Positions 10,201-61,491 of a stretch of DNA of 64,000 nucleotides are shown here, piece by piece (position 1 is the stretch's first letter; each line of letters begins with the position of its first letter). The DNA comes from Asterias rubens (Eukaryota), in assembly GCF_902459465.1 (NCBI RefSeq), contig NC_047067.1:8680001-8744000 (forward strand), given 5' to 3'. A program made the position numbers and the translations under genes. The notes beneath the pieces were generated by a model. It ran no database searches and was not told the origin of the DNA. It saw nothing but the letters and a program-made list of their open reading frames with translations.

Positions 10201-11977
10201 CAGAATGGGATTGGACCTCGACCTTGAGAGTGGATCTGGTTCCAGTTCTGGAAGTGGAAACAGAATGGGATTGTACCTCGACCTTGAGAGTGGATCTGGT
10301 TCCATTTCTGGAAGTGGAGACAGAATGGGATTATACATTGACATGGAGAAGGGATCTGGAAGTGGCGACAGAATGGGATTGGACCTCGACCTTGAGAGTG
10401 GATCTGGTTCCATTTCTGGAAGTGGAGACAGAATGGGATTAGACATTGACATGGAGAAGGGATCTGGAAGTGGCGACAGAATGGGATTGGACCTCGACCT
10501 TGAGAGTGGATCTGGTTCCAGTTCTGGAAGTGGAGACAGAATGGGATTAGACATTGACATGGAGAAGGGATCTGGAAGTGGCGACAGAATGGGATTGGAC
10601 CTCGACCTGGAGAGTGGATCTGGTTCTGGCGTTGGAAGTGGCGACAGAATGGGATTGGACATTGACATGGAGAAGGGATCTGGTTCCGGTTCTGGAAGTG
10701 GTGACAGAATGGGATTGGACCTCGACCTTGAGAGTGGATCTGGTTCCAGTTCTGGAAGTGGAGACAGAATGGGATTGGACCTCGACCTTGAGAGTGGATC
10801 TGGTTCCAGTTCTGGAAGTGGAGACAGAATGGGATTGGACATCGACCTGGAGAAGGGATCTGGTTCCGGTTCTGGAAGTGGAGACAGAATGGGATTGGAC
10901 CTCGACCTTGAGAGTGGATCTGGTTCCAGTTCTGGAAGTGGAAACAGAATGGGATTGGACCTCGACCTTGAGAGTGGATCTGGTTCCATTTCTGGAAGTG
11001 GAGACAGAATGGGATTAGACATTGACATGGAGAAGGGATCTGGAAGTGGCGACAGAATGGGATTGGACCTCGACCTTGAGAGTGGATCTGGTTCCAGTTC
11101 TGGAAGTGGAGACAGAATGGGATTAGACATTGACATGGAGAAGGGATCTGGAAGTGGCGACAGAATGGGATTGGACCTCGACCTGGAGAGTGGATCTGGT
11201 TCTGGCGTTGGAAGTGGCGACAGAATGGGATTGGACATTGACATGGAGAAGGGATCTGGTTCCGGTTCTGGAAGTGGTGACAGAATGGGATTGGACTTCG
11301 ACCTTGAGAGTGGATCTGGTTCCAGTTCTGGAAGTGGAGACAGAATGGGATTGGACCTCGACCTTGAGAGTGGATCTGGTTCCAGTTCTGGAAGTGGAAA
11401 CAGAATGGGATTGGACCTCGACCTTGAGAGTGGATCTGGTTCCAGTTCTGGAAGTGGAGACAGAATGGGATTAGACATTGACATGGAGAAGGGATCTGGA
11501 AGTGGCTACAGAATGGGATTGGACCTCGACCTTGAGAGTGGATCTGGTTCCAGTTCTGGAAGTGGAGACAGAATGGGATTGGACCTCGACCTTGAGAGTG
11601 GATCTGGTTTCGGTTCTGGAAGTGGTGACAGCATGGGATTGGACATTGACATGGAGAAGGGATCTGGTTCCGGTTCTGGAGGTGGCGACAAAATGGGATT
11701 GGACCTCGACCTTGAGAGTGGATCTGGTTCCAGTTCTGGAAGTGGAGACAGAATGGGATTGGACATTGACATGGAGATTGGATCTGGTTCCAGTTCTGGA
11801 AGTGGAGACAGAAATGGATTGGACATTGACATGGAGAAGGAATCTGGTTCCGGTTCTGGAAGTGGTGACAGAATGGGATTGGACATCGACCTTGAGAGTG
11901 GATCTGGTTCCGGTTCTGGAAGTGGCGACATAATGGAGAGTGGATCTGGCAGCGGCCGCGGAGTTGGCCAGGATTAA
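7258..11977 (+). CDS. Gene A: secreted Ser/Gly/Asp-rich tandem-repeat protein (serglycin-like/proteoglycan-core-like), join(7258..7417,8727..11977), 1136 aa
   Basis: caaaATG at 7258 opens a signal peptide MTVSRYFVAVLVVVFLGLTYA-NP. The GTGAGT donor at 7418 (phase 1) and the ttttacaaaacAG acceptor at 8725-8726 (phase 1) join it in frame to the 1090-aa ORF. The total of 3411 nt is a multiple of 3, and AATAAA follows the stop. Confidence 0.9.
7807..8125. mobile_element. Partial Kolobok-type MITE, K1-related (intron of gene A)
   Basis: Left TIR TTAAAGGAACTGGACACCTTTGG and the shared internal sequence. The right end is missing. Confidence 0.7.
8454..8625. mobile_element. Short MITE in the gene A intron
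   Basis: TIR GGAGTGCGTTT(T/A)GGCGACCCCAACC. An extra TIR copy lies at about 8340-8365. Confidence 0.65.
9041..11930 (+). repeat. Coding tandem repeat: about 50 units of 60 nt or 48 nt encoding MGLD(L/I)D(L/M)E(S/K)GSG[xxxG]SGDR
   Basis: Units counted from the translation. All length variation is in multiples of 3, so the frame is preserved. Confidence 0.97.
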
Positions 11978-17363: not shown

Positions 17364-17750
17364 TTAAAGGCAGTGGACACTATTGGTAATTACTCAAAAT
17401 AATTATTAGCATAAAACCTCACTTGGTAACGAGTAAAGGGGAGAGGTTGATAGTATAAAACATTGTGAGAAACGGCTCCCTCTGAAGTGCCATAGTTTTC
17501 GAGAAAGAAGTAATTTTACACGAATTTGATTTAAAGACCTCAGATTTAGAATTTGAGGTCTCGAAATCAACCATCTAAACGCACACAACTTCGTGTGACA
17601 TGGGTGTTTTTTTCTTTCATTATTATCTCGCAAGTTCGATGACCGATTGAGCTCAAATTTTCACAGGTTTGTTATTTTATGCATATGTTGAGACACACCA
17701 ACTGTGAAGGCTAGTCTTTGACAATTACCAATAGTGTCCACTGCCTTTAA
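17364..17750. mobile_element. Kolobok-type MITE, family K1 (full length)
   Basis: TTAA-AGGCAGTGGACACTATTGGTAATT...AATTACCAATAGTGTCCACTGCCT-TTAA. TTAA TSD with AGG/CCT ends. Confidence 0.85.
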
Positions 17751-18861: not shown

Positions 18862-21800
18862 ATGGCAGGTCGGATCCGACGGTATGCGACCTCCCTCTCC
18901 AGCCTGATCTTGTGGGTGTTTTGGCTCAAATTGACGGCAGCTAGTGACGGCTCGCAGGGACATTACGAAGGGGGGTCTCTCACATGGATCGCCGATCAAA
19001 ACAATCCACGGAATGTAAGTAAAATGCTCATTGTTTTGTTCTCTCTCTCAGTGTAAATTTAACTGGTCGTGTATGGTCAAGCGCACTGGACTCAATCTCT
19101 GGTTGGTGTGGGGGGTTCGAATCCTGGACGTAGTCCTTACACACGGCCATTATTACGTCGTCCTTCGGATAGGACGTAAAGCCTTTGGTATCTCACGTTG
19201 TGTTAATGCACTTGAAAGAACCCATTACATTCTTATCGTTGTTTTCTGGTATGCTTGGGGAAGAACGTGCCAAAGCGTCTGATGTAAACCGTTACATTGT
19301 GCTATGTCGATGGGCTGCTGGTGAAATGGGTCTTACATAGCTTAGGTATGCTTGTAGCAACAATTTGAAAGCAGCGTTACATAGGAATTGCATTGTTAAT
19401 ATTTTTTGTTGAAGAACAAATTAAAAAGGTTTGAAAAATTGAGCATGCTCTTCTCTTTCTTCTACACTTTCTTATGTTGTATGATTCCTTATAATCTTTG
19501 AATTATTACTGTGTCGTATTATCTTATTGATTAAGGTTACCAAAATTCTTGATCGCTTTGCAGATCATGAATTTAGGAATGTGAAAGAAAACTTGGGTTG
19601 AACCCACCACCAACTGCAGCCATCTGGGCCTAATTTCATAAAGCTGTTAAGCAGAAAAAATACTGCTTACTTAGCAAATTTCTTTGCTAAGCATAAATTG
19701 AGTGGGACACCAGTTGTAACAATGCAAGCTTAATGTAATTTTGGCCGGTTACCTGTTTCTGTTAAGCAACACTTTCCTGTGCTTATCAAGTTTCTGTACT
19801 TACAGGTTTTATGAAATCGGGCCTGAACTGCGGGATGGTAAAGATTGACTCAATGTCAGTTTTGGTGTAGGGGCCTACCATCACAAAACACTGCTTTTAA
19901 CGAATGGTGTCTTTTAAATCAAAATATTAAAAGTAAGACTGCGTCAGCTGAACACTACTTGTTTAACACAATTTGATAACTGATGCTTCCAAAAACTCCA
20001 TGTTCTGGGTTTCTCATAACTATACAAATGTTATCTCTCCCCTTTTTTAAAGATTTAAATAATACTTTTGATTTTTTTTTAAAGAATATTGAAACTAAAC
20101 AATATTGGGAAAAAAGACGTATAGACAAAATTTTCTTTCAGTACGTTCGAGTGCATAGAAACTGTGTTTCATGTTTGACTTGACTCAGTAAAAAAAATCA
20201 AAATATTATTTCCAAAGGAAAAAACCAATTCTCCGGAAAGAGTGAATCTTTATATTTTCTCTCTTTTCCCCAATAGGTAAACATCACGTTCCAGTTGAAC
20301 TTCAGACACAGTTACTTCAACGGCTACCTACACGAGCAATGCAGCGAAACCGCGATCCGGGAGAAGGAGGTACTGAGCACGGAGGGCTCGTTCCGGGTAG
20401 ACGGTGAGAGAGTGACCTGGGCGAACTACGTCTGCACGGACTTCGACGAGGAGATTAATTGGAGCACTGGTAGCTTTACATTCACTCATCGTCTGACTCC
20501 AGAACAAACAGGAATTGATGTCAAGTATGTATTGCAGGGGTGTTTTTAACATTCTTTTCCTGATCCATCCCCCGCAGAATGATGTAAACCATCCCGGTCA
20601 TTACCTCATTGGGCCCTCAAAACATTAACGCTCTTTTCTGAAGGAAATTAATGTACATTATGTTTGCACATTCTTAATTGTTTGAAGACTTCTTTTTATG
20701 TTTGTTTGTATTTATGATAAACAAAGAATACCTTTATTTTATATTGTTTAATATGCCAAGAAATAATATGACTGAATGTAAATCGGTGCCATGACAACTA
20801 ATTTTGACTGAACCCATGTACACTGATGTGTACTGTCCAGAGTTCTGTGAAAAAGAAAATCGCAGGCATATTTCTCGGGTGGGATTCGATCCACGACCTT
20901 TGCAATTCTAGAGAAGTTGTTAGTCATAATTAATCGCCTGTTGGTCCCCTTGCTCGAGTGTTCGCTATACTTACAATGAAGTTAACAATCTTCATTTCAG
21001 TTTTGAGGAGTGTTGCTGGCTGACAGAGATCGCCAATAACGGGCAGCAAGTCTCCGAGGGTCGGGGTTGGAACCTCGCCAGCAGGGTCGACATCTCCCCT
21101 CGCCCGGACAATAATAAAGTGAACAGCCCACCGGTGTCACTGTCTCTGCCCGTATACCGGATGAAGAAGGGCTGCCCTGGTGTACTGTACATTCCTGGTA
21201 GGTCCAGTCCCCAATTTCTCAAAAAGCAGCTTAGCAAAACAAAATGGTGCTCAGCTGAATAAGGCCACCAGCCAAACTGACATGTCACATGTACAATTTG
21301 TGACTGGTATCCTGCTCATATCTGCTTAGCAGACAGTTGTTAAGCAGCTCTATGAAGTTGGGGCCAGATGTCATTCCTTCAGTCTGTCATATTTTGATAT
21401 CCGTATTTTCTTGGTGTGATTATTTTCCCCACGGCAATAACACTTATATCCACACAAACGAAACATGACACTGAAACGATCAATCATGCTCAAACAGTTT
21501 TAGCATAATTCATCATGAATGTGGCCAGTGTATCTAAGTTTTAATAACTTCGTGCAAGAAAAATGTCATATAGATTTGTTCGTTGTTTTTGCGCATATTT
21601 TGGTCCTCGTCTTAATAAGTTGTGTTGTTTATATATTATATGATGATAAATGTTCTGGTTGAGACTCTTAAAAGGCACTGGACAATGAACACGGTTGGTC
21701 GTTACTCAAAATACATGTTAGCATAACACCAACTTACTAGGTAGTAATGAGCAACGGAGAGTTGTTGGTAGTGAGAAACGACTCTCTCTGAAGTAACGTA

Positions 21801-24800
21801 TTTAAAAGAAAAAGGTTATTTGTCACTTTTGTTTGAAGGTCTGAAGTTTTTGCATATGCAATTGTGTCCGTCCGGACACATTTGCATATGCAGTTGTGTC
21901 CGCCCCGTGCAAAACCGTCCTTGCGGTAAATTAAACGCCCTGGATAGACGGAACACGCTCGCCATTTTTTTACAAGCTAAGTGCATGTCATGAATGACAT
22001 GGGAAATGTTCGGCCGTTGGGTATTCGCAGCAATCATAAAAATACGTGAATATTCATGCTGCATAGGCCTACGTAGGTTCAGTGCATGCACACTCGCTTA
22101 CGCGCGCACGTCATGTACAGTGATGTACATGTCCGCCGGACGGTTTTTGCATAGCCCCGGACACGATTGCATATGCAAAAGTGTCCGGAGCGGACAGTAT
22201 TGCATGGCGGACACAATTGTATTTGACACCGGTCGTTAAAGAATCGAGCCCAGCAAACCAACCATTGCATCATCCTCTCTTCACGGCCCCACCCCACCTT
22301 TATCCTTTTAAAACAGAACAATACAACCATTCTTTAAAAATGAAATGTTGTTGGCCATTGTTATACTTCGTCTTCAGCATCCGATCTTGACGATGACGTC
22401 ATTCGGTGTAGGTGGACGGACCGTGACAGAAGGGAATGTAATCTACATGATGGTGACGTGTGTGGCCCGTTGTTTGTGGACTCAAAGAGGAAGAAATTAG
22501 GAGCAGAACTTGAAGAGGTGTGTTGCTTGAATTTTACTTTTAACTTAAAAAACAAAATTGGCAAATCGAGGGTGCCCACTGACGGCGGATTGCCCCTTCC
22601 CTTGAGTACGGATGATATTTTGCAGTTCCAAGGCACTTGGCGATGCTGGGGGTCTGCGGCTCTCCTCCCCCGCCAAGTTTCACGTCCAATCGCAGGGTGA
22701 TCAGCCATTTTGCGTGTCGATCAGTAGAAGTTAAAGTTTACCGGGTCAGACCATTTGTCAATTCCACTTTCACTTTTTAAATTATAAAATCGACTAAAAC
22801 TGCATTTGCGGGACACTTATTCCCAGTCAGCATTTTACTTTGTTCCCCGCTACAATACTTAAAAATAGAAACACCAATGTAGTACATTCCTATTTCTAAA
22901 TATGTATGTCTGAATTTTACAGGACACCTGTAAGTTGACATTTCGAGCTAAGAACCCCGTTGGTATCTACGCTGTGTCGGTCATGCTTGAAGACTTTGCT
23001 CCCACCGACCTTACCTCGCCACTCAGCAAGATCCCTCTACAGTTTCTCTTCGAGATCTTGCCGAATAAGGGACCGTGTCGACAGCCTCGGGTACTGGGTG
23101 GCCACGGCGAGTGTGTGACGGTACCGGCCGGTCAGGAGATGCAGCATACCATCTTGGCTCAGAGTTCCTCGCCAGAATTTGAGTATGTTACACACTCCCT
23201 ATTTTATGTGAAATGCATGTATTGCGGTTGAAACCATTATGAAGAAACTACAACATAGTAAACTTGCACACACCTGACTGTAAAAATCATTCTAACACTA
23301 GAGGGTCAGTGTACTAAAACATGACCCATTCTGAGCCAGTATAACCCAAAATCTGGATCAAAATAACACAGAAATGAGTCAAGCACAGAATCCGAGTTAG
23401 TGACCAGTTTCTGGGTAAGTTTGACCCATGAGTAAAAAACAAGTTGACTTTAAAAAATCTTCAACTTACAAGATTTCAGCCGTAGATTTCACCCAACTCA
23501 TGGGTTTAATCCACGGACTGAGGACGAACATAGTTCCGAAACCGTAGACGTTAGGACGCATTGAAACCATCCAAAGTTAGGACGAGTTTATATTCGTCCG
23601 GAGTTAGGACGAGTTTATACTCGTCCTGAGTTAGGACGAGTTTATACTCGTCCCGAGTTAGGACGAGTTTATACTCGTCCTAACTCAAAATAGGATTAAT
23701 CCTATAGCGTTTCGTGAAATCGGCTTTTGGGAAGTTCAGTGTTTAATTAAAGTACGGATACGGGACCGATTGAAGAGAACTTAGTAAATATTAATCTAAA
23801 ATCTGCTCAAAACACGTTTCTGTCTTAAACTTCCCCTAAACAGCGCGAAGACAATTATGTCCTTCAAACATTTCATTTTGTATTCGAATTTGCCATATCA
23901 AAGTGTATAAAATCTGCAGCTTAAAAGATGCCAGAGAAGTTCAGTGTTTACTGAAAGCAGGGATACGGGAACGATTAAGTAGAACTTAGTAAATATTAAT
24001 ATGAAAGCATGTCTTGTATAAACAAGTTTCTGTCCGATATTTCCCCCTGAACAGTTCGAAGAAAATCATGTCCTTCAAGCCTTTCACATTTTATTTGGCT
24101 TTGCCATATCAAAGTTTATAAAATTTGCAGCTTAAAAGTTCAGTGTTTACTGAAAGCACGGATATGGGATCGACTGAATAAAAAAAAGTAAATATTAATC
24201 TGAAAGCATGTCTTATGTTAACACGTTTCTGTGCAATATTTACACACAATATAAAATGCCAGAAAATCATGTTCAATCCTTTCACTTCATATTTGACTTA
24301 GCCAAATCAAAAGAAGTATTATTGCTAAAGAACGTGCAAAGAACTATTAATGCACTGATTGTTAAGTTGACCATGGCGTGCAGATTTGAATAAATTCTTC
24401 CACATATCAATAACGATGTATGCCCCCATCAACAAGTGGGTCGTGCGTGACACCAGATTTCAAAATCAGGTTGAATTTAAGCTCAACAAAAACGTGCAGT
24501 GCACGTAAAATCCTTGACAAAATTATGTTCAGTCTGTGTTTTTTTCTCTCCATGAAACATCAAGCTAATATGACATATTAAAGATTACATGATGGTGTGT
24601 TGGTTCAAAGTAAATTAGGATAGAGATCATTGTACTTTATTTTACTATCAAGCCACTCTCCTTATTCATTTTTTGAAATGTAATCCATTTCTGACCATAC
24701 ATTAATAATTCTTCTCTTTCTCCGTAAAACGTGACCAGCTAAGATGACATATTATATTAATATACCGATTACATCATGGGGTGTTAGTCCAAAACTTGTG

Positions 24801-27800
24801 GGATACGTGACTGCACTTGTTTTTTCTCAAACCAGTTTTTCCCAGTCTCCTATTTAATTTTTTGAAATGTAATCCATTTCTGCCCATACAATAATAATTC
24901 AGGGTTTTTGTTTTTCCATAAAACGTGACCCAGCTAATTTTATGACATATTAAAAGACCGATTACATGGTGTGTTGGTTCAACATGTTTAGAATTGAAAT
25001 GACTGAACTTTTTTTCAAGCCAGTTTTTTCCCCACTTTCCTTTTTTATGTTTTGAAACGTAATCCATTTTGATCGAATGTATTAATTCGCGACCTTCGTA
25101 TTCCTATCCTAGCAGGAGTGGTGGGCGGAATACGTGCACGTGCTAAGCAGGGGGCGAAGATGACATTAGTTACGGCGTCTTCGGAAGTAGTTTGCTGCTG
25201 TGGGGTGGACTGACAGCTCTTTAGATGGGAAACTTTGGGCATCACCGGGATGCAATTTTTATTTATATTTGCCGTCCTCACAAATTTTCCTGATTTTTGT
25301 TCATAGATTCGCTTTTTTGAATCGATTTAGAAGGAAGAAAATCCCGATTGAACAGAACTACGAAAGTTGCAAGTTTTGATGTATAGCCCACCGGGATGGG
25401 GGCAGTATAATGTCTTAGCCCGCTGGGGGAAACAATAATGATACTCAAGTGTTTCTTAAAATGTTTTAAACCGTGCTTCTGATGTAAGAGCAAATGATGA
25501 AACGTGACCAGCAAATTACAAGATATAAATTTTCAAACACCAAGAACATCGTGGTGTGTTGGTTCAAAGCTTTTATATATTGGAATTACTGTACTTTTTT
25601 TTCTCAAACCAATAAAACACACTCTCCTATTAATTTGTGTTTTTTTGTGTGAAATGTAATCCATTTTTGATGGCAGTATTAATTCGCGGCTTTCATTTTC
25701 CAATCCGAGGGGTAGGAACGGTGGGCGGAATACGTGCACGTACTAAGCAGGGGGCAAAGATGACATTGTGGTTTAGCAGTATCTTTGATTACTTTATTAG
25801 TTGGGGCGTCTTGGGTCAGTAGCTTGCCGCTGGGGTTGGGTTGGCAATTCTTGCGAGGGGATACTTCGGGAATGCACAATTTTCCTTTTTTTTTTTTTTT
25901 TTAAGACTCACTTTTTCGAATCGATTTAGAAAGAAAAAAAAACCTTTAAAAAAAAGCACTAAGACAGTGGTAACTTTGATGTACTGGAACAAAAATCCTG
26001 ATATTTTTTCTTAATGACTCCCTTTTTGAATCGATTTAGAAAGGAATCAATCCCCATTCAAAAGCATTTCGACAGTGGCAACTTTGATGAACGGACAAAA
26101 TGTTGGCACCGCGATGGCGCCAATAATCTTCGCGTAAAAGTGTCAACAGTGTTGTACATCTTCATTCGAAATAATATTAATAAATGGTAGGCAATACACA
26201 ACGTGGACCGCACACCAAACCATTGCCAAATTTACTTCGAAATTTCATTTATTATTTACCATTGTCTTGGAAGTGTCCCATGCTTCATAGTCATCTAATT
26301 TCAGCCAACACGCCACGACAACTAGCGAGAATTTTGTCAAACTAGGTTGTTGAGCGAGTTATTGAGAAAAACATCGAGTAGGTCTATAGGCCTATTGTTT
26401 TTTTAAAGGTTTTTGTTGAGTCTGTGTCGAGTGACATTTTTTTCTATTCCATGGCAGGGTGCCAGACGGACTTGTTTCTGTGTTCAGGGGTAACTTTTCA
26501 CACAAGGAAAAGGAAATTCACGTACTTTTAACATGACTAATAAAATATTGAATTGAATGGAATTAAATTGATATAATTCAGGTTCCAGGAGTGCATAAGA
26601 AGTTAGCTCTTGGAGAAGCTATTCGTTATAAACGAATATGAATAACTATAAGTTATATATTTTAAGAGTAACAGAAGTTGTGATTCTTCATTTTTATATC
26701 CTTTTAAAGGCAGTGGACACTATTGGTAAATACTCAAAATAATTATTATCATAAAACCTTTCTTGATTACGAGTAATGGGGAGAGGTTGATAGTATAAAT
26801 CATTGTGAGAAACGGCTCCCTCTGAAGTAACGTAGTTTTCGAGAAAGAAGTAATTTTCCACGAATTTGATTTCAAGACCTCAGATTTAAAACTCGAGGTC
26901 TCGAAATCAAGCATCTGGAAGCACACAACTTCGTGTAACAAGGGTGTTTTTTCTTTCAGTATTATCTCACAACTTCGACGACCAATTGAGCTAAATTTTC
27001 AATTTTGTTAAATATATTTCATGCATACGTTGAGATACACTAAGTGACAAGACTGGTCTTTGCCAATTACCAACAGTGTCCAATGTCTTTAACCCAATTA
27101 GTTTGTTTGATACTTCTTACAGAATTACCAGTATTGATACAATAAAGTCTCGCGGCATCAGCGTATCTCCCGTCAAGAAGGTGGACGGTACCGACGCGGA
27201 CTATTTCATCACGCTGACGTGGACACCGGCCATTGGTCAGCTCGGACGTCACATGGTTTGTTACAGAGCTGAGGAGGAAGGGGATTTCTCGAGTGACGCA
27301 GCGTGTGTCTACATCAACGTTGTGGGTAAGTGTTAGGGCGTGGAGTATGAACTTTTCTCAATAGTGTTATCACCTGCTTCCTGATCTATCCTTTTCTGTC
27401 CAGGTGGCCCATAAAAAAGGCTACAACGGCCTCGCTCCTACGTGCCCTGTCCCTGACTACTGTCTTGGCATCATTCCAGCTCCTCCACCAATAGGGCCTT
27501 GTCAAACGAGGCAACTTTTGCAGGCAACTTGGAGGCAACCAACTGCAGTGCGTGCTTCAAGCCAACCTTGGTAGCATGTGAAATATTTTAAGATCCCCAA
27601 GAAAAACGAGAATGCCTTTCTTCTTGGAGAACTGGTTGCCTGTCTTTCGTGACATTGCCTTAACACTTACCCCTTGTCTCCTCCCTTTTTTACCCACCAT
27701 CCATCGCTCGCAGTCGCAGGGCACTGATTTGTTTTGTCCAACATTCACAAACCTATAGGACCGTATCCGAATTGGTGACTGGCTGCGGCTACAGCTATGT

Positions 27801-30800
27801 TGCTTTGGACATCATTTACCTCAGCCGTATCCGTATCTGTAGCCGTATAGCTGACGTTTCCAAAAAGATGGGTAGCACAAATCGTCTTTGCCCGCCATAT
27901 TTTATTAAAAAGTGGAAAAGTGCAAGTGTGTACGCGCTGCGAAGAACTCTCGGCCACTGATAACCTTTCACACGTGCACGTTTCATCAAAGATGGCGGTC
28001 AATGACGTCATGAGCCATCAACCAATTCGGACACGTGGGCTGAGTCAGGCACATCGTGTATGACGTAGTCCTCTATGCCACAAACATTCACTGACGTCAC
28101 AACATTTACAAATGTTGCTTTGGACATTTCGCTATATGGAAATTGTGAAAGAGTAAAGCTGTGCTGATGTCCTAACAAACATTATCTTTGATGGTTGCTG
28201 TTTACTATACTTTGTTGTTGTACCTAAATCATAGTCCCTGTATAAGTAACCAACTCACTGTTAACCAATTGAGTGTGACTGCACACGCAGCCAATATTGG
28301 GGTTAGGACGCTGTGTGTCAGTAGACTTACCAGGATGTTGAGAAAAGAGAATCAGCTATTGCAAACTGCCTATCAACTAAAGGGACCTATGGTATAAATG
28401 CAACAAATAGTTAATGGCCTGACGTTTCGATCCTAGCAGAGTCTTTCTCAAAGGCTACACAAATTATGTTCTTAGAGCATGCTCAGAACTATACAAACAA
28501 AGAAACTTACCAGATAGGTCTGGTTCCACCTAGCGTTCTAAACTCTCATATTGTTGCACCCATTGATCTCCATTAATTGAGAAGCAAATGTGAACCTAGA
28601 AGAGTAACCCAATCTGGGCCCAATTCCATGATCATGACGACACAGCCCCTTTAAAACTTAATTTCTAAACCATAGTTGTTGAGTTTCTCACAAATTCAAA
28701 ATATTAATCTTAACACAGATCCGGAGCATTTTGTGCCCTTTTTTGTAATGACGTCAGAGTCTGTACCAGCACCAGGATCAAATGTCACAGAGAGAGAAAT
28801 TGTTATCAAGTTTAACAAGCAGGTAATGTTTTTCAATTTTCAAATTCAAAAAGTTAAATAAAGAATGTAACTAATTCTCCAAAAGCCTAACACAAATATT
28901 AGGAGAACAGAACACACTTCTCACATGCTATGAACTTATGTATCAAGTTTTTCAGACGGTCCCTTATTCCATATTTACTTTGACATTATTTCCGATGGCA
29001 TAGGACCTTGAATCGACTAGTGGAATCCATTTCAATAATTTAAAGTTTTATTCAATTTCACTGTCCGGTGTTGGGCTGTATAATAATAGAGGACCTGCAT
29101 GGCTACTGTGGATTAGGAACACCCAAAACGCGGGTAAATTGATAAATTGAGAAGGTTCAAGCAATTTCCCTTTAGTTTTCAGTTAACAGGGGTCAGACGT
29201 TGTTATTTGGTTGGTTATTGTAGAGATGTATTGGTCTCCAGAGGGGTTTGGCGCGCAATGATTGAACCATCTCAGTGGGATCGTTAGGAACTCGCCCTAC
29301 ATTATCGAGGTGAAGATTTGATTTCAAAGGGGTCAGGGGTCAGGAAAAAAAATGTTTTCATGCTTTGCGGGTTTGAAGGGGAGGGAGGAGGGGGAAGACA
29401 ATGTTTCGCCTTAAAGTGCGCGTGTGGATTCTAGAAGTGAAGTCTCATTCTACTTGGTATGAATGTCTTTAAAGACAGTGGACACTATTGGTAATTGCCA
29501 AAGACTAGCCTTCACAGTTGGTGTATCTCAACATAATGCATAAAATAACTAACCTGTGAAAATTTGAGCTCAATCGGTCATCGAACTTGCGAGAAAATAA
29601 TGAAAGAAAAACACCCTTGTCACACAAAGTTGTGTGCGTTTAGATGGTTGATTTCGAGACCTCAAGTTCTAAATCTGAGGTCTCGAAATCAAACTCGTGG
29701 AAAATTACTTCTTTCTCGAAAACTATGGCACTTCAGAGGGAGCTGTTTCTCACAATTTGTATACCATCAACCTCTCCCCATTACTCGTCACCAAGACAGG
29801 TTTTATGCTAATAATTATTTTGAGTAGTTACCAATAGTGTCCACTGCCTTTAAAGGGAGGGTATATTTTTGGTAATCACTCTACCTTTTGTTTTAATAAA
29901 CTGAATGTCCACTTCTTTTTGCTGTTGATTTTCCTTAAAGAAAAGCGGCAGTGACGAGATTGTGGGAATTCAAAATGTTCATTTATTAAAGAAGTGTTAC
30001 TCTTTGATAGGACATTTTGTTATGAATGCCCCAAACTTACTCCACAAAGTCCACCGTGCCTTCTTATATTAAGTCAAACCCGATGGATGGTATCACAAAC
30101 TTATTAAAGGTGTTATGTCAGATTTTTAGGCCCCAAACATTAAAAAATAGATTTTTTTTGAGTGAATGGTATTTCAAAGAGTATCACCCGCTCTAACGAA
30201 CAAAAGTTTAACTTTTACTTTTAATGGTCAGGAACCATGACAACAATTTATAACGTTTCTTATAAAACACATAACAATTGGTCACGTGATATATTGTCGG
30301 GATCCTGACAAAAACTAATATTGAGCACTTTATTTCACTGCTACTAATAATTGGCGGACTTTTTCGAGCAATGGCTCAAATGAAAGCTTGTTACTTTCTC
30401 GACCCCAATCAAAATACCTATTGAATTTTAAATCAAAATTGTTGGCCAAAAATCTGACATAGCATCTTTAATGTCAATATTTAATTATAAATAAATTAAG
30501 AATCCGTGTTGCATTTTGCGTATAGTATAGATTATATAAATTCCTCCACGCTATTTTATATCCTAGCTTTCTGCCATTATTCGGGGCAGTGGGTTCCAGT
30601 ACAGCTTCCAAAATTCATTTTCTAATTCCTGAACATCATGCACGGTAGTTTTCTTTCGTAAATGGTGTTTGAAGCTTTGCATGGTGGTGATGGAGAATAA
30701 AAGTAACAGTTACTTTTGTTTTCTTTCGTTCGTCCGTCGTGGTACCTCCCCTGATAACATACATCAATTCGTTTTGACCAGATTTTGAGACCGAAGGAGT

Positions 30801-33800
30801 CCGGGTTTGTCACCATTGTGGACGCCGAGGGAGAGGTCATGTATACGGAGGACACCAAGAGGAGTGAAGTGGATGGGAACGATCTCAGCTTCAGCCTTCC
30901 CTTCGATCTGGTGTACGGAGCAACCTATCGGATCGAGGTAGACTCAGATGCAGTCCGGACCAGACGTCGCTGCGAGGCAAGACTCTCTCGGACCGAGTGG
31001 AGCTTCACCTGGATGGGTAAGCTCAATCGTTACGATGTAGTCCCGCTGCTAAAATAATATAGGATTCGAACAGTCTCTAGCTACAGGGCAATCACTTCCG
31101 GCTTGGTCTTTAGATAGGCACTCTACGCTTGACGTACTCTCTAAATGTAAAAGAGTGAAAAACACCACTCTTTACATTTCGAGCTGTCCTTCATATGGCT
31201 CTTCAAAAAGAGTGGTGTTTTTTCACTCTTTTAGAGGGGTTTCACTCCAGGACAGAGTGAAAAATCACTCGAAAAGATGCAAACTTCAATCTAAAAGAGT
31301 GGAAGACCACTCGAAAAAGAGTTGTCCTTCATATGGCTCTTGAAATGGTGTTTTTTCACTCTTTTACATAAAGAGAGTATGGGAGTTTCCTCCTCTGTCC
31401 ACTATCGTCTGTGATTTTGTTGGATGTTTTTATCTGTACAGACTCTCTATCCTGTAAAACAATTGTATCATTGTAAAACGTAATCTAGTAAATGACAGTA
31501 TACGCTGAATAAGCTTGTATGTGCAAGTCTATATAAAATTTAAATAATTCTGCCTTTTAAATTGCCGAAGGAGTAGGCCTACCTTAATAACCCCCAATTT
31601 TAAACAAACATTACAAAACACTACCCTTAGTAACAGAGTACGGGGAAACGAAGTTTAAATCACGTTTACGTTTCAGGACGGAAACTGCCCGCCATGATCG
31701 AGGCTCCACTACGGACGGCCCGCCCGAGGGCACCAGGGTCCAGCCCGGTAGACTGTCACGGCAACTTCATGCAAGTCTTTGTCTCCAAACGGCTCTCCGG
31801 AGTCATAGACCCGCGCACAATGTACCTCAATGATCAAAGGTGTAAAGGGATGGATTACAACGCAACGCATTACGTCATCGGGACGTCATACAATGGGTGT
31901 GAAACAGCTGTTACTAAGGTAATTTTTTATATCATAAAATGATTAAAAAAATAACATTGATATTTCTAGTACGTCATGCAAAACAGAAGAACTCTCCTAT
32001 TATACACAAAGGCAACCATACTTCGAAAGCTATGGTTTCTGAAATAAATATGTTTTGAGATGTGTTTTGAATTCTGAACAAGTTTCTGCTTTATTACAGG
32101 AAACATTTATTTATGTTGCCTGTGTTGAAGTGGGACGCTATAACATTTATTTATGTTGTCTGTGTTGAAGTGGGACGCTATTCTAAATTAGAGATTGCCT
32201 GGCATTTGAAAAGCATGTTGATCTGCCGTTGTCAACCGATTTTCAAATTGTAACCATTTTGAGATTGTTTGTTTTGTGAAAATGACAGGAAGAAAACGGG
32301 CTTGAAATTGGTCTCGTCACCTTCGAGAACACAGCTCACATCCCACCCCAACCGTACACATCCGGGAGCGAGATCACGCGAGATCACAACATCGAGATCC
32401 ACCTCGGGTGCCGTGTCCACGAAAGCTCCGTGAACTATCTGTCGTTCGACCCCAACGTCACCACTCTCGTGTTCTACGACGAAGGGTACGAAAGGTATAA
32501 CTTTTCGCTCGAAATGTTCGACGACGGCAGTTTCACCACGCCGTTAAAATCGAACACTTTCCCCATGAAGGTCCAGCTGCATGACATGATGCACTTCGAA
32601 GCCCGTGTGAAGTGCCACCCTGGGAAGGACTGCTCCCTCGTGCTCGACAGGTGCTGGGCCACGCCATCTACGAACCCATTTGACTTCACTCGTTTTCCTT
32701 TCCTTGAGGATGGGTAAGTTGGGCGGTTGTGGCAGGAGATTCTGTCAAGATTCTGCCCCCCATAGCAAACTTTACACAAAATACTTGTAACAGCGCCCTG
32801 TTTTAAATCATTCTTCTACAACCAATGTTAATTTCCCATCGGGGGGGGGGGGGGCATGATAAATCCAAATCTATCGTGTACAAAGACCGTTTTTCAGTGT
32901 GTAAGAAATGTACGACGAACTAGTTTCGTCATTTTCCTCTCGATTTGTTCACAATAATTTGAATATTGATAGAAGTACACTGCTTGCTGAACGAAGATGC
33001 GTTTTCATTATCAGTGTTCCGAAGCAAGATTCATTTATGAGCCATTTCAGCTTCTTTGATGTGTATTTGTAACAATGTTCAATTAATAGTCCGCTGTTGG
33101 TTGGTACTTGTTTTCAGGTGTCCCCGTGATGACACCGTACAGTTGCTAGTCTCACCTTCAAGCAGCCGGAAGCGATTTTCCCTCAGCTCATTTGCTTTCC
33201 TTGGAGAACACCACATTAATGGCCCGGTAAGTCAACATAAGTAACAAATGACTCTTGCCCCATTCGTCATAGTAACAAGCCCAATTTCACGAAGGAAACA
33301 ACTATACTTCTGTAAATACAATTGTTGATATAAGCGTGGAACCAAGTACGATCAAAGAAACAACCCAAACAAACCGGTTATCTGTTTCTGCTTAATACCT
33401 AGCCTCTTTATTAAAAAAAAAACGGGTCAGAATGTACCCATAATTCGAGTCCCAGTGTGCTTGCAGCCGACTGCACGAAACGCTAGTCAATTTCACCCTT
33501 TTAGGGTCAGGCTCACACGGGCAATGCTTTAAAAAAAATATGGGATTTGAATCCAACTCCGCGTCATCAATGCATAGTTTGTAAAAACATAAAACTGAGA
33601 CTGATCATGTTTTTTTTCTTATATTCATTAATCACTGATTTCCAATAAAGAAGAAAAATTACTGCACTGTAGGATGGATACAAAATATGATCGGAAGTAC
33701 AAAATAAAGACTACATTTCTTGAAGGTCACTACACCTCCACCTGGTAAAACTCGCGGGGTATATTGGTTATACATCGATATGAATTATAGTCAGAACGCG

Positions 33801-35667
33801 CTGTTATCAAAGAGACTAGACACATTAAATCACCCATGGGGAGAGACCCACATGAGAAGCACAAAAAAAGAAATTCATGTTTATAGAAAATTGATTGATT
33901 CCAGATTTTCTAGTGGAAAGGGAGGTCTTTTTGTCCCACTGTGATTTTGAGTCATTCCGCTGTAGTTGACACATAGCTCAATTTGTATCGCGTCTGGTTA
34001 CCGCAGGGGAAACCTATAATGCAAAAGGTCGCATGGGTGGATTGCCAGGTGCGTTAATTTTAGCTTTTCTATACAAAAATTTGCTGACAAAACGTAAAAT
34101 GTTGTCAAAACTTTGTTTGACCTTTATGTGTTTAGGCCAATGTACCATGTGGTCTAAAAAATTAAAGGACTCCAAGGTCACATTCATATCGGTCGATCTC
34201 AAAACAAATTCGATTGCAAAAATGGTGGTCGGTCCTGGGCCCAATTTCATAGAGTACACAAATTTGCTAAGCATGACATTTCTTCCTTGATAAAAACAGG
34301 ATTACCAACCAAATTTCCATTTGTTGCATAACTGCTAGTTATTGGTGTTCAGCTGCTGCTTACTCATCTTGAAAATCATGTGGAAATTTGGTTGGTAATC
34401 CTTTTTTTATCGAGGCAGAAATTTCATGCTAAGCAAATTTTGGTGCTTATCATCTACAAAAAACTGGGCCCTGGGCTTCGATGGGGTAGGATAGTTTTTG
34501 TAAGTAGGATTTGAAACTTTGCATTGTGAAATTACGATCTAAGTAAGGTTTGCGGTAACACCATTAAATAAAGCCTATCTCTAAATGAGTTGGGGTGGTT
34601 CTGAAAACAACCGTAGGTTTCAAACACCCTAAAAACTCATGGTTCTGATCCAGATTTTGGTGCACAGGGATCAAATTTGGGTCACGCAGACCAGATTCAT
34701 TTCTATGCATTTTTTAGTACACATCCCGAGGCTTATAGACCCAGAAATGTGTTAGGACCCATAGGATCCGGGATCCGGGTAACTTCTGATCCAGGGGTTT
34801 GTAAAGTTTGGGACATCCAAACCGGTAACCCACACTGCGTATTCCTTAAGGGGGACATTCTTCGCTCCCTCATGGTTTTCGGCGGAATCTCAAAAACGCG
34901 ACCACCTTTAGAAATGTTCACATGAAGACTTTGTTGTATACATCTACATTTATTCATCAGGATTAAACAATTACACGGTTCAGAAAACCAAAGGTATATT
35001 TTGTAAAGATGTAAAACAATTTTATTCGTTTTGATTTATGATTGCAGGTGTACGTACATTGCGAGATGAGGGTCTGTTACGCCATGGAGTTTGATGCCGC
35101 ATGCGAGACGATTTGCACCGACCCTTCGCTGGAGGAGATCTTCGGCGGGGTCAGCGAGCGGGGATCGGGTGATGAAGTGAACCATCTGTTGCAGCACCAG
35201 GCTAAACATGGCTCCTCTTCCCCCGGTAAAACGTCTCACTCTCGGGCTCATGTGACGACAAGACACGTCAGGAATGCACGGGCGTCGGAAAGTGGTGGTG
35301 AGCATCGGTAGTGTTTAGGGTCCCCTCCCCTCCTGCACAAAATAATGAAAATATGTTCAATTTTTTTTACAAATATTAAAATATTAAACAAAAAGTTTAG
35401 AAACAAAAAATTAAATTAAATAAAAAAACAAAGAAAAAAATGTTGCACATACAAAAACAAACAAAACGTTCTGATATTTACCCGAAGTGTATTATAATCT
35501 TATTTATTGATACAGCTGGCTACCATGAGTATTCACCACTAGGCTTCAATGCAGACGTTGTTGAGATTTCCATGTTGGGAGGTATCATGGCCTTACTGAT
35601 GGTTCTGATCGGCATTCATTGTGCCAGATGGAGAAGCGACTCCAAAAAGACTAACGTCGACGTCTAG
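18862..35667 (+). CDS. Gene B: ZP-domain type I membrane/secreted protein, 905 aa; join(18862..19014,20277..20524,21001..21197,22378..22517,22923..23182,27123..27325,28719..28822,30782..31016,31677..31918,32289..32713,33118..33226,35048..35297,35516..35667)
   Basis: All 12 introns are GT-AG with matching phases (0,2,1,0,2,1,0,1,0,2,0,1), and the total of 2718 nt is a multiple of 3. Motifs seen: signal peptide, HYEGGSLTW, CCW, NSPP, DLDDDVIRCRW, and YAVSVMLEDF..PLSKIPLQF. ZP-N has 4 Cys; ZP-C has LDRCWATP, GCPRDDTV, RKRFSLSSFAF and VYVHCEMRVC. RHVRNAR is a furin-type site, followed by the TM segment ISMLGGIMALLMVLIGIHC. Confidence 0.88.
19065..19403 (+). mobile_element. tRNA-derived SINE with a Nin/Deu-like central domain and an L2-like tail
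   Basis: B-box GGTTCGAATCC at 19114-19124. The core GTCCTTCGGATAGGACGTAAAGCC...GCACTTGAAAGAACCC resembles the conserved Nin/Deu SINE core (recognised from memory). AT-rich tail. Confidence 0.6.
19627..19823. mobile_element. Harbinger-type MITE H1
   Basis: CTG-GGCCTAATTTCATAAAGC...TTATGAAATCGGGC-CTG. Confidence 0.75.
20815..20915 (-). mobile_element. tRNA-derived SINE fragment (same family as 6849-6917)
   Basis: GTGGGATTCGATCCACGACCTTTGCAATTCTAGAG matches the 6849-6880 segment. Confidence 0.65.
21208..21364. mobile_element. Harbinger-type MITE H1, 10 bp downstream of the gene B exon 3 donor
   Basis: CAG flanks on both sides. Right TIR GCAGCTCTATGAAGTTGGGGC. Confidence 0.7.
21845..22228. mobile_element. 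Partial Ginger-like MITE, same family
   Basis: Shared interior and right end TTTGACA-CCGG. The left end is missing. Confidence 0.7.
23479..23725. repeat. MITE-like element with four 27-bp hairpin-forming tandem units
   Basis: The unit GAGTTAGGACGAGTTTATACTCGTCCN occurs x4 at 23575-23686, bounded by GATTTCAC/GTGAAATC. Confidence 0.75.
23731..24310. repeat. About 200-bp tandem repeat, about 3 copies
   Basis: AAGTTCAGTGTTTA...GGATACGGGA...AGTAAATATTAAT recurs at 23732, 23937 and 24137. Confidence 0.8.
24540..26080. repeat. Patchwork of local duplications in gene B intron 5
   Basis: GGTGTGTTGGTTCAA and AATGTAATCCATTT blocks recur. GTGGGCGGAATACGTGCACGT..TAAGCAGGGGGC occurs at about 25120 and about 25720. 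Confidence 0.7.
26704..27092. mobile_element. Kolobok-type MITE, family K1
   Basis: Same TIRs and internal sequence as 17364-17750, with TTAA flanks. Confidence 0.85.
29469..29853. mobile_element. Kolobok-type MITE, family K1 (opposite orientation)
   Basis: TTAAAGACAGTGGACACTATTGG...CCAATAGTGTCCACTGCCTTTAA. Confidence 0.85.
30104..30471. mobile_element. Kolobok-type MITE, family K3
   Basis: TTAAAGGTGTTATGTCAGATTTTTAGGCC...GGCCAAAAATCTGACATAGCATCTTTAA. Confidence 0.8.
31135..31379. mobile_element. TA-flanked MITE (Tc1/mariner-type)
   Basis: TA-CTCTCTAAATGTAAAAGAGTGAAAAACACCA...TGGTGTTTTTTCACTCTTTTACATAAAGAGAG-TA. Confidence 0.75.
34238..34470. mobile_element. Harbinger-type MITE H1
   Basis: CTG-GGCCCAATTTCATAGAG...CTGGGCC-CTG. 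Confidence 0.75.
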
Positions 35668-40014: not shown

Positions 40015-43000
40015 ATGGGGATTTCTCCCCTGTTTTTGATGTGCGTTGTAGGCTTGCTGGTGTTGCACCGTGTTGGTGCATCTCATTTCAGGGGTGGGAT
40101 CATCACATGGAGATCGCTACCCGACAACCCACGATCGGTAAGAATGTTTTGGATTATTGACTGAGCAATTAATTGCTCCATGGTAATGTGATGACATTTT
40201 GTTTCATTCTCCGTTTTGACAACTTCAGTGAATTGTCACGAGAAACCGTACTATAGCTTTGGGAAACGTCTTAATTATTTGATATCTTAGTGATTTACTC
40301 TTATGGGGTGGGGTTAGTTCTAAGAGTAGGAGGTGCAAGCATGTAGAGAACTTTGAGGTGGGCCATAATCATTTATCAACTAATGAGATATTTAAGATTT
40401 GAAACTTTGCATTGTGGAAGCTTTATGCGAGGTTTCTTTTTGAGTAGTGTCGGTTCTGAAAGGAACCTGTTGTTGACAACCCAACTTTCGATCACTCGGC
40501 CCACAGCTCTGATCGTCTTCTGCAACATTCGTCTGAAGACGATCATAGCTTACTGATCAAAACGTTGAGTTGTCAACCACCAGTTATTTTCAGAACAAAC
40601 ACTGCTCAATAGGGATTTGCACATGCGGCTATACCGCAAACCTCACCTAAAAGATAGTTCATGATTTGTAAAAAACAAAAAGATTGTAATATTAATAGAG
40701 AAATTCACAACAGCTTGCTCCGATCGTAGTTTTCAGATAACCTGAATCCTACATAATCCCCAATGTTCTTTTTTGGTATGTTAAGCACGACTCATGAACA
40801 AGCTTCGTGTGAAGAATTGGCAACATATTCTACGGCTTTCATAGTGTGTTTTCTGGTTGGGTTTTGTTTCAGTGTGGTTATGTGTAAGCGGTGTTTGCAG
40901 TATGAATAACTATAAGTTATGTTTTTTAAGGGGAACTTTAGTTGGAGTTCCTCAGTTTGATAAGGCTTAGAATGAGACGTACAGTTGCAAAGAGCATAAA
41001 CATGCGTTTATTGAAACAAATATCCGTAAAAAACCTCCCCCCCCCCCTAAAAGAAAACACACTCCAAAACCTGTTGAACAGCCATAAAACTTCCTCACCT
41101 GATCATACTGTATAAGAGATTATTAGAACTAAAAAAAATATAAAAAAAAGATAATAAACGGCTTTGATTTTTTTTTAAATTATAAACCTAAACGTAAATT
41201 ATAATAAAGCCATCCACTTGATTTCCCACCGTTTTTCCCTTCAACTTTTAAGACTCATGTGTTCACCAAAAACTTCAGTGACCGTCGGAGCTGGGAAGTG
41301 CTGTAGTGTTTGGCATTGGTTGAAAGTTCAACATCAATATTTTAATATGAAAAACAACTTTAAAGTTTGTTTTATTGGGTATCGTCCAAATATTTTGAAA
41401 TTTGACAAACAAGGGCAGTAAGTTTGTACCACATCTGCCAACTTCTAAACAACAAAATATTTGTTGATTTCAAATTGTCCGATCTTAGTACGCTGCCGGT
41501 ACACAAATCACATTCAGAACAATGAGCTTCGATTTTTTGTCCTAATTTGATTTCAACGTGTGAATATTATGACACGTTGGTTCACTTTGATCAAGTTTTA
41601 GCCGCGAATTGGATGGCGGTTTGTGAAAGACACTTCCCGTAATTCAATAAAATAAATCCTTGATTTAATTTGTATTGAGAGAAAAATAAAAGGCCACTGG
41701 CACTTGACACACTTGGTATTGAAAATAATATAGTTTTCGCAGAAGAAAACAAACACTCCCTTAAAGGCATGGACACCTGTGTAGTAATTGTCAAAAACCA
41801 GTCTTCTCACTCGGTGTATCCCAGCATATGCATAAAATAACAAACCTGTAAACTTTGACTCAATTGGTTATCGAAGTTGGAAGAGGGAATAATGAAAAAA
41901 AAAACACACTTGTTGTACATGCTTTAAGATGCCTATGCTTTAGGCCTGTGGTGCTTTATTAGTTTAATGAGAAATTACCTCTTTCTCAAAAACTACGTTA
42001 CTTCAGAGGGAGCCGTTTCTCACAATGTTTTATACTATCAACAGCTCTCCGTTGCTCGTTACCCAGTAAGGTTTTATGCTAATAATTATTTTAAGAAAAA
42101 CCAATAGTGTCCACTGCTTAAAAAAAAATGAGTGCATCACAAAACTTGGCTCTAATTACCCTCTTGTATTGATTTAATACAATTTTAGGTATCAACAACA
42201 TATCCTGCACATCTTCCAGTCATAAAACTGCAATGTACTAATAAACACAAACTTTTAAACACTTAAAATAATCATTGTTTACATTATGATTACCATCATC
42301 CATTGTAAACAAATGATCACATTTGTAAACACTGCAATCAGCATAACAGTTGATAAAATCTGTTTGGATCTGTTATCCAATAGCATCCAGTTCCTTTAAC
42401 TGAAACAAAAACAATTTCACGTCTTGAAATACCAGACGGGTGTCAGGTGTCGTCAATATACCACCTGTAGAGTTTGTTCTTTTCCATCAATTGGATTTAA
42501 ACCTTCTGACATAGTTTTGTATACATTATTATTATCAAATTATTATTTGAATCCAAAACAATTCTCGGTAGAAGATAAGTCGAAGACAATAACAAGAACT
42601 TTCTAGCCTTGACAAGCAAAGTGGAAAGGAGCCTCCCGCTGGGGTGGGAGGGTACGGGTGTCTCATTGCAGCAAGGGTGCTTTGACCGCGGCCCCCGCTC
42701 CAGTTCGTCCTATTTTTGAGTGAACTCGTCTTCTTTTCTTATTTTGAAGAAATACTTCGCTACGGTCGAAACGTCAGGCCAGTAACTATTTTTTGGGAAT
42801 GGCCAAAATGCGAACGTACATTTTTATGGCCGCATGGTGAAAATTCGTATTTTCAATTATTAGCACGTTGTTGAATTGAGCCACGCGGTGTTTCTTCGAA
42901 CATGTGGTTAAATTTGTAATGGCTTTGATCTTATTTTATCTTCATTAAAAACAATAGTTGCAAAAGTTGGCCTGCGTTCGTTGGCAATAAATCAATGGTG

Positions 43001-61120: not shown

Positions 61121-61491
61121 TTAACGGCAGTGGACACTATTGGTAATTACTCAAAATAATTATTAGCATAAAACCTTACTTGGTAATGAGTAATGGAGAG
61201 CTGTTGATAGTAAAAAACATTGTGAGAAACGGCTCCCTCTGAAGTGATGTAGTTTTCGAGAAAGAAGTAATTTTCCACGAATTTGATTTCGAGACCTCAG
61301 GTTTAGAATTTGAGGTCTCGAAATCAAGCATCTGAAAGCACACAACTTTGTGTGACAAGGGTGTTTTTCTTTCATTATTAACTCGCCAATTGAGCTCAAA
61401 TTTTAACAGGTTTGTTTTTTTGTGCATATGTTGAGATACACCAAGTGAGAAGACTGGTCCTTGACAGTTACCAATAGTGTCCAGTGTCTAA
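61121..61491. mobile_element. Kolobok-type MITE, family K1
   Basis: TTAACGGCAGTGGACACTATTGG...CCAATAGTGTCCAGTGTCTAA. Confidence 0.8.

Follow-up and report, generated by a model that had tools for sequence, protein, structure and literature searches.

A Sib-type N-terminal head joined to a uromodulin-like ZP module in two tandem genes of the starfish Asterias rubens

Analysis of a window of 64,000 nucleotides of the Asterias rubens genome (contig NC_047067.1, positions 8,680,001 to 8,744,000 of the forward strand; the positions below are those of the window) showed two tandem genes, here named B (18862-35667) and C (40015-60906), with predicted products of the same domain order: a signal peptide, a SIBA-E_N domain, two immunoglobulin-like (Ig-like) domains, a Big_5 domain, the ZP-N and ZP-C domains of a zona pellucida (ZP) module, a basic site and a transmembrane (TM) helix. 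Judged from their sequences, B and C are most likely anciently diverged tandem paralogs whose family, found in animals, consists of glycoprotein precursors of the type-I membrane class. The four domains before the ZP module form a head of the type found in the Dictyostelium proteins SibA-E, and we consider it probable, by analogy with uromodulin, that both products are cleaved, polymerising ZP filaments which would display these heads as adhesive arms.

The preliminary description of this stretch, made from the sequence alone, had read 18862-35667 as one gene, and as a whole it was confirmed. Between its start ATG and its stop codon, gene B consisted of 13 GT-AG exons on the forward strand encoding 905 amino acids, and the spliced product was identical, residue for residue, to the RefSeq 'uncharacterized protein LOC117291797' of Asterias rubens (P0116). 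Transcript contigs of 2.9-3.5 kb from four runs carried the splice joints 19014|20277, 20524|21001 and 21197|22378; the same contigs were compatible with 22517|22923 and continued to an exit at the exon-5 donor (23182). The first four introns of B are backed by RNA, and the gene is expressed and spliced.

Exon 1 (18862-19014), with an RNA joint and identity with P0116, encodes the signal peptide and the first strand of the SIBA-E_N domain (HYEGGSLTW), while exons 2-3 (20277-20524, 21001-21197), assigned by Pfam and RNA joints, encode the remainder of that domain (CTD..W, CCW), an NSPP linker and the start of the second, Ig-like, domain. Exons 4-5 (22378-22517, 22923-23182), placed by RNA and Foldseek, hold the DLDDDVIRCRW motif, the second Ig-like domain (EDF..PLS.IPLQF) and the start of the third, and exon 6 (27123-27325), which is identical to P0116 and all-beta in the model with a predicted local distance difference test score (pLDDT) >90, encodes the third Ig-like domain (LTWTP..Q.G.H..C). 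The Big_5-type Ig-like domain is encoded by exons 7-8 (28719-28822, 30782-31016). ZP-N, an interdomain linker and ZP-C follow on exons 9-11 (31677-31918, 32289-32713, 33118-33226), as shown by Pfam and by collinearity with uromodulin. A feature scan placed the end of ZP-C, the RHVR/RNAR site, a hydrophobic strand, the TM helix, a 13-residue tail and the stop codon on exons 12-13 (35048-35297, 35516-35667). Two pairs of in-frame alternative acceptors were observed in B, 28719/28758 (39 bases apart) and 35516/35543 (27 apart), and the frame stays open with either member. The RefSeq product used the upstream acceptor of both pairs (28719 and 35516), and alternative splicing at these pairs, adding 13 and 9 residues, is possible.

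Pfam profiles supported this order. SIBA-E_N (PF24907) matched P0116 at residues 38-151 with 30.9 bits for the whole protein and 32 for the head alone, against a curated cut-off of 28.1, while ZP-N (540-636) scored 34.9 bits (cut-off 24.7) and ZP-C (662-789) 96.9 bits (cut-off 24.6). The Big_5 domain (PF13205) that had been predicted for exons 7-8 was found there (residues 414-511) at 23.2 bits in the whole protein and 24.8 bits in the head alone, so that the cut-off of 23.6 was cleared only when the head was scanned by itself. Among the paralogs, P0003 scored 25.3 bits for Big_5 and P0117, one of three long starfish proteins described below, 55.9 bits, the strongest Big_5 score of all. For gene C, scans of single exons returned ZP-N, ZP-C and a weak Big_5 match (exon 10 alone, 18.2 bits), and thus the downstream ZP-N and ZP-C domains were confirmed by Pfam in both genes. 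Profile matches to the head were otherwise sparse: SIBA-E_N at E 0.01 was reached by just 7 of 59 aligned heads, and the Ig_SIBA-E_2nd and Ig_SIBA-E_3rd profiles gave weak matches in one of the 59 each. NCBIfam gave zero matches for the head. No VWA domain or repeat family appeared in the Pfam scan of P0116 (E up to 0.1), and a type IX secretion system (T9SS) sorting domain (CHU_C or Por_Secre_tail) was absent from the Pfam scans, the C-terminus consisting of ZP and TM. All sequence motifs listed in the preliminary description were present in B and C in the same order in an end-to-end alignment. The forms HFRGGxxxW, CTDxS..DW, CCW, NSSP, DPDxDxVRCRW, EDF..PLS.IPLQFL and WTP recurred in 37-59 homologs, and the motifs are therefore family-wide and not due to chance.

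The head of B (residues 29-530) was modelled with AlphaFold from a 59-row alignment. The model was all-beta with a pLDDT of 92.9 and a predicted TM-score (pTM) of 0.86, which suggests that the domains are packed in a fixed arrangement. A Foldseek search against the Swiss-Prot models returned Dictyostelium SibA-E (residues ~20-392) as the top five matches, with E values from 4e-19 to 6e-15 and a root-mean-square deviation (rmsd) of ~4 Å. The best alignment paired residues 4-374 of the head model with SibA 20-392 (E 3.9e-19, rmsd 4.4 Å). Below them were generic Ig chains with rmsd >25 Å, separated from SibA-E by a gap of nine orders of magnitude. Together with the SIBA-E_N score, this bore out the resemblance to Sib proteins that had been proposed, and in the predicted model the N-terminal ~370 residues of SibA-E correspond collinearly to the first three head domains. 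Among solved structures in the PDB, no specific match was found for the whole head or for its first 234 residues (Foldseek best E 0.12, VIA-align Z ≤6.1); the chains returned were of generic Ig, FN3 and cadherin type. The shapes that came closest in the ESM Atlas were, in order of rank, an echinoderm ZP cluster (62 members), rotifer and mollusc clusters, and Bacteroidota proteins with type-IX sorting domains. The Bacteroidota models reached a template modelling score of 0.50-0.53 against the whole head and of 0.66-0.70 against its first two domains (rmsd 3.3-4.0 Å over ~200 of 234 residues). A single exon as Atlas query produced noise only (score 0.82).

Downstream of the head, a phmmer search against solved proteins aligned the ZP module of B (residues 538-796) collinearly with residues 333-583 of human uromodulin (E ~1e-18). 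Uromodulin was the best match, followed by ZP2, GP2, ZP3 and, weakly, TGFBR3. The four conserved cysteines of ZP-N were identified at 540, 569, 588 and 635 in B and at 529, 562, 581 and 624 in C; ten cysteines were counted in the ZP module of C, and the same ten plus two more in that of B. The TM helix that had been described for both genes was found at 875-893 in B and 838-858 in C. For the basic site, also described for both, B showed overlapping RHVR/RNAR motifs (844-850), followed by a hydrophobic stretch that begins at 868 and runs into the TM helix; C showed only RR at 789. Cytoplasmic tails of 13 residues in B and ~29 in C close the proteins, and NPxY was absent from both. By every feature that could be examined, the predicted products of B and C are ZP-module proteins.

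Gene C was predicted as a model of 15 exons on the forward strand encoding 887 amino acids, with all introns GT-AG and an open frame throughout. Exons 1-10 (40015-40137, 46415-46662, 47726-47910, 48311-48420, 48657-48764, 49749-49909, 50450-50623, 50822-50862, 51746-51846, 51962-52226), drawn from the GT-AG borders and the open frame with the weak Big_5 match on exon 10, encode the signal peptide and the four-domain head; and exons 11-15 (52651-52892, 53581-53990, 58668-58773, 59795-59969, 60692-60906), assigned by Pfam on exons, encode ZP-N, ZP-C, the RR site, the TM helix and the tail. Exon 12 of C was found in probable RNA runs, the same ones as for B. The two products were ~31% identical over a full-length alignment, the intron phases were shared and C had two extra introns. 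BLASTP of C also reached head-bearing proteins such as P0018 (E 3e-63). In a tree of the first ~400-420 residues (SIBA-E_N and the two Ig-like domains), B and its Patiria ortholog were placed inside a strongly supported asteroid-only clade and C on a long branch outside it, and the split between B and C is therefore older than the asteroid-only group.

Several further features were observed within gene C. The intron between exons 5 and 6, which has no counterpart in B, contained an open frame of 191 residues (49033-49605) whose translation resembles the C-terminal portion of a protein from a retrotransposon. The large intron between exons 12 and 13 held a long AT-rich tandem array (56000-58200) with a strong GC skew of 0.39, which translates as repeated GVSLAFWLKIGEKLIKSQ-like units. 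Finally, partial copies of the start of exon 14 (VF.HCD... segments) were found at 59319-59800, directly upstream of the true exon at 59795.

Exon 5 of B, used alone as a query against a library of 1.84 billion representative proteins, retrieved 111 proteins, and all matches with an identifiable source were animal. The named sources were starfish (Patiria, Acanthaster, Asterias), crinoids (Anneissia, Antedon), the brittle star Amphiura and the bivalves Mercenaria and Sinanodonta. A lamprey protein with head and ZP module was retrieved with the Patiria head as query, and more lamprey proteins were retrieved from that one. In the long matches the exon-5 module lay mostly near residue 210-250, which places the head at the N-terminus. 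The regions after the head in animals comprised a ZP module, twelve EGF domains and ZP, three SRCR domains and ZP, TSP1, Sushi arrays, and CARDB/RHS, with one further type in which a protein of ~530 amino acids gave a weak EGF match. The combination of head and ZP module was also found in starfish, crinoids and lamprey, and a crinoid and a clam protein had EGF or SRCR domains as insertions. As an N-terminal cassette of old origin, the head has in animals been joined to varied stalks, including EGF plus TM. The earlier reading of the architecture as chimeric was right in that the combination of head and ZP is real, but it overstated the oddness, the head being a widespread animal N-terminal module. 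As had been expected, an invertebrate homolog carried the automatic name 'integrin beta-like protein C'. The head was matched, too, by two cluster entries of AlphaFold DB, both called 'ZP domain-containing protein', whose accession prefixes suggest a coral as one source and a teleost as the other.

Word-indexed protein searches were not sensitive enough for mapping the distribution, as they returned only 4-7 proteins for each of three queries (the Patiria head, the lamprey head and a 59-row head profile). One of their matches, P0130, was a bacterial-type Big_5 protein aligned over the Big_5 part only (E 5e-4). Among the metagenome matches to exon 5, P0011, P0051 and P0093 were rejected as spurious (WD40 or low-complexity proteins), and the contigs of P0010 and P0122, which encode reverse transcriptase, ig, fn3 and TSP1, were judged to be animal-like and not bacterial. 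Three long starfish paralogs (P0117, P0118 and P0119; 1387-1509 amino acids) showed extra head-matching stretches before the ZP module (5-6 BLAST segments).

The likeness to Bacteroidota surface proteins that had been noted stood at the level of the shared predicted head fold and the Big_5 profile only, and no close bacterial relative was found by sequence. With a single head as query, a scan of 185,579 prokaryotic species genomes found no relative, and exon 5 gave no identifiable bacterial match in the 1.84-billion-protein library. DNA-pattern matches to DPDGDxVRCRW were rejected as head homology, because the Ig-like domain that carries the motif is C-terminal, unrelated and preceded by a different N-terminal region. 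The two proteins concerned, from metagenome-assembled genomes (L005 3863-5266 and L006 4750-6411; Planctomycetaceae, Coriobacteriaceae), had an N-terminal region common to both and unrelated to the head, while their C-terminal Ig-like domain carried SDPDGDAV(S/R)CRW, the short motif of the second head domain. As it is present in an unrelated bacterial Ig-like domain, DPDGDxVRCRW is a general feature of such sandwiches.

Uromodulin is produced as a membrane precursor, is cut near the membrane and polymerises through its ZP module with the non-ZP region projecting (PMC4755741, PMC7737619, PMC7486124), and the complete SibA protein of Dictyostelium acts in adhesion to the substrate (PMC9453864), from which the head may be read as an adhesive or ligand-binding arm. 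In the function that we consider probable, B and C would be made as membrane precursors with a signal peptide, a rigid all-beta four-domain head, a uromodulin-type ZP module, a TM anchor and a short tail, the Big_5 Ig-like domain serving as a spacer after the three Sib-like domains. A protease would cut at the juxtamembrane basic site and free the blocking hydrophobic strand, and the ZP modules would then polymerise head-to-tail into extracellular filaments, both steps being drawn from uromodulin and other ZP proteins. The Sib-type heads would project from the filaments as many adhesive arms, with ligands such as matrix, cells or microbes.

A number of points weigh against this proposal. Endoglin and betaglycan are ZP proteins that do not form filaments. 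C had no RxxR between ZP-C and the TM helix and retained the dibasic RR alone, and the exon structure of gene C is a predicted model. Polymerisation and cleavage are proposed by analogy with uromodulin, and that the head is adhesive is an assumption derived from SibA as a complete protein, not from this part of it.

The chief alternative, which we regard as rather unlikely though deserving of serious attention, is that B and C are non-polymerising, TM-anchored surface receptors or co-receptors in which the ZP module, like that of endoglin and betaglycan, would bind a ligand or mediate dimerisation. It would account for the TM helix and cytoplasmic tail kept in both proteins, for the missing RxxR site of C and for the TGFBR3 ZP-C chains among the PDB sequence matches (E 5e-5). 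However, the filament formers uromodulin, ZP2 and GP2 gave much stronger matches (E 1e-18 to 3e-11) that covered the complete span from ZP-N to ZP-C, the two overlapping RxxR motifs and the hydrophobic strand of B are the typical arrangement of a polymerising precursor, and the short tails showed no recognisable signalling motif.

That the head is a generic string of Ig/FN3-like sandwiches, whose likeness to Sib and Bacteroidota proteins would be convergent or trivial, is improbable. The generic PDB chains and the occurrence of a DPDGDxVxCRW-type motif in an unrelated bacterial domain would fit it; the SIBA-E_N score above its curated cut-off and the nine orders of magnitude between SibA-E and generic matches do not, nor do the ~370 residues and three domains in fixed orientation shared with SibA-E and the fit of the first two domains to the Bacteroidota models. 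A head acquired recently from bacteria, or fused to an animal ZP gene by assembly contamination, could be suspected from the mostly bacterial Pfam family Big_5 and from the predicted fold common to Bacteroidota type-IX-secreted proteins, but it is already refuted and of negligible probability because the head is split over 8 to 10 GT-AG exons and spliced in RNA (B), bivalves, lamprey and several echinoderm classes have orthologs or paralogs, and bacteria did not come up in the searches (no identifiable bacterial match to exon 5, no relative in the species genomes, no match in NCBIfam); the earlier statement that the gene is not contamination was upheld.

Other features of the window were of a general kind. 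Interspersed repeats in both orientations were found in introns and flanks at 17393-17668, 19555-19856, 20763-20913, 21216-21517, 21669-22272, 26826-27008, 29549-29824, 46793-47000 and 61220-61411, and word depths in the thousands in the RNA-type runs indicated that several of them are abundant or transcribed elsewhere in the genome. A GC-rich, strongly GC-skewed block (7258-11977) lies upstream of B, as a neighbour of two secreted matrix-type genes.

The advance made here is the recognition of the combination of head and ZP module, not of a new fold, since RefSeq already lists the genes as 'uncharacterized' and Pfam contains both domain families. Literature searches found nothing relevant on Sib heads combined with ZP modules, on the locus name or on the Pfam accession, and no characterised family with such an architecture, in agreement with the earlier statement that no functional description of this combination was known. 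Among the structures formed by ZP proteins are egg coats, the tectorial membrane, the cuticles of insects and worms, and the antibacterial net of uromodulin. What such a filament does is decided by what it displays, and here that would be a head treated in the literature as specific to amoebae; reviews describe Sib as amoebozoan-specific or as 'Dictyostelium only' (PMC9453864, PMC2651865). The present results extend the Sib head to organisms far outside Amoebozoa, provide an animal system in which its binding partners can be investigated with reasonable ease, and open a way to study the spread between domains of life of an adhesion cassette that Bacteroidota also have. More tentatively, the Sib-type head could be a pre-metazoan adhesion cassette of Amoebozoa and animals, with a counterpart in Bacteroidota, that was repeatedly grafted onto ZP modules to give an unrecognised class of adhesive filaments from echinoderms to lamprey, or, should the two AlphaFold DB entries indeed be from a coral and a teleost, from cnidarians to fish. 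If this doubtful extension were true, such filaments could trap microbes as uromodulin does or build surface coats.

Comparison with known systems showed partial likeness to each of four groups. The Bacteroidota type-IX-secreted proteins (CHU_C/Por_Secre_tail), which often contain Big_5- and PKD-type Ig domains, resemble the head of B and C in predicted fold, both sides of the comparison being models; they differ in having C-terminal T9SS sorting domains and no ZP module, and no significant sequence similarity was found. The invertebrate 'integrin beta-like protein A/C' proteins (P0018 of Antedon, P0128 of Amphiura) have a head ~30% identical over ~480 residues (profile E ~1e-165), but they are ~530 amino acids long, lack a ZP module and are likewise uncharacterised, the weak EGF match being that of P0018. 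Dictyostelium SibA-E are, as B and C are predicted to be, type-I membrane proteins that begin with the head, and the N-terminal ~370 residues (SIBA-E_N followed by two Ig-like domains) agree in domain order and packing. Since the VWA domain, the bacterial-like repeats and the NPxY (talin-binding) tail of SibA-E are missing in B and C, which have a ZP module instead, B and C are not members of the Sib family and have the Sib head alone in common with it. Uromodulin (UMOD) and GP2 are alike to B from ZP-N to the end of ZP-C, which is collinear with conserved cysteines, UMOD being the best sequence match of the solved proteins, and probably comparable in a putative cleavage site (RHVR/RNAR in B, RR alone in C) and a membrane anchor after ZP-C and, presumably, in carrying non-ZP arms on a filament. 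The arms of UMOD consist of EGF domains and D8C on a glycosylphosphatidylinositol-anchored protein, whereas the arm of B and C would be the four-domain Sib-type/Big_5 head of a TM-anchored precursor, displayed on filaments that are here proposed from the likeness of the ZP modules.

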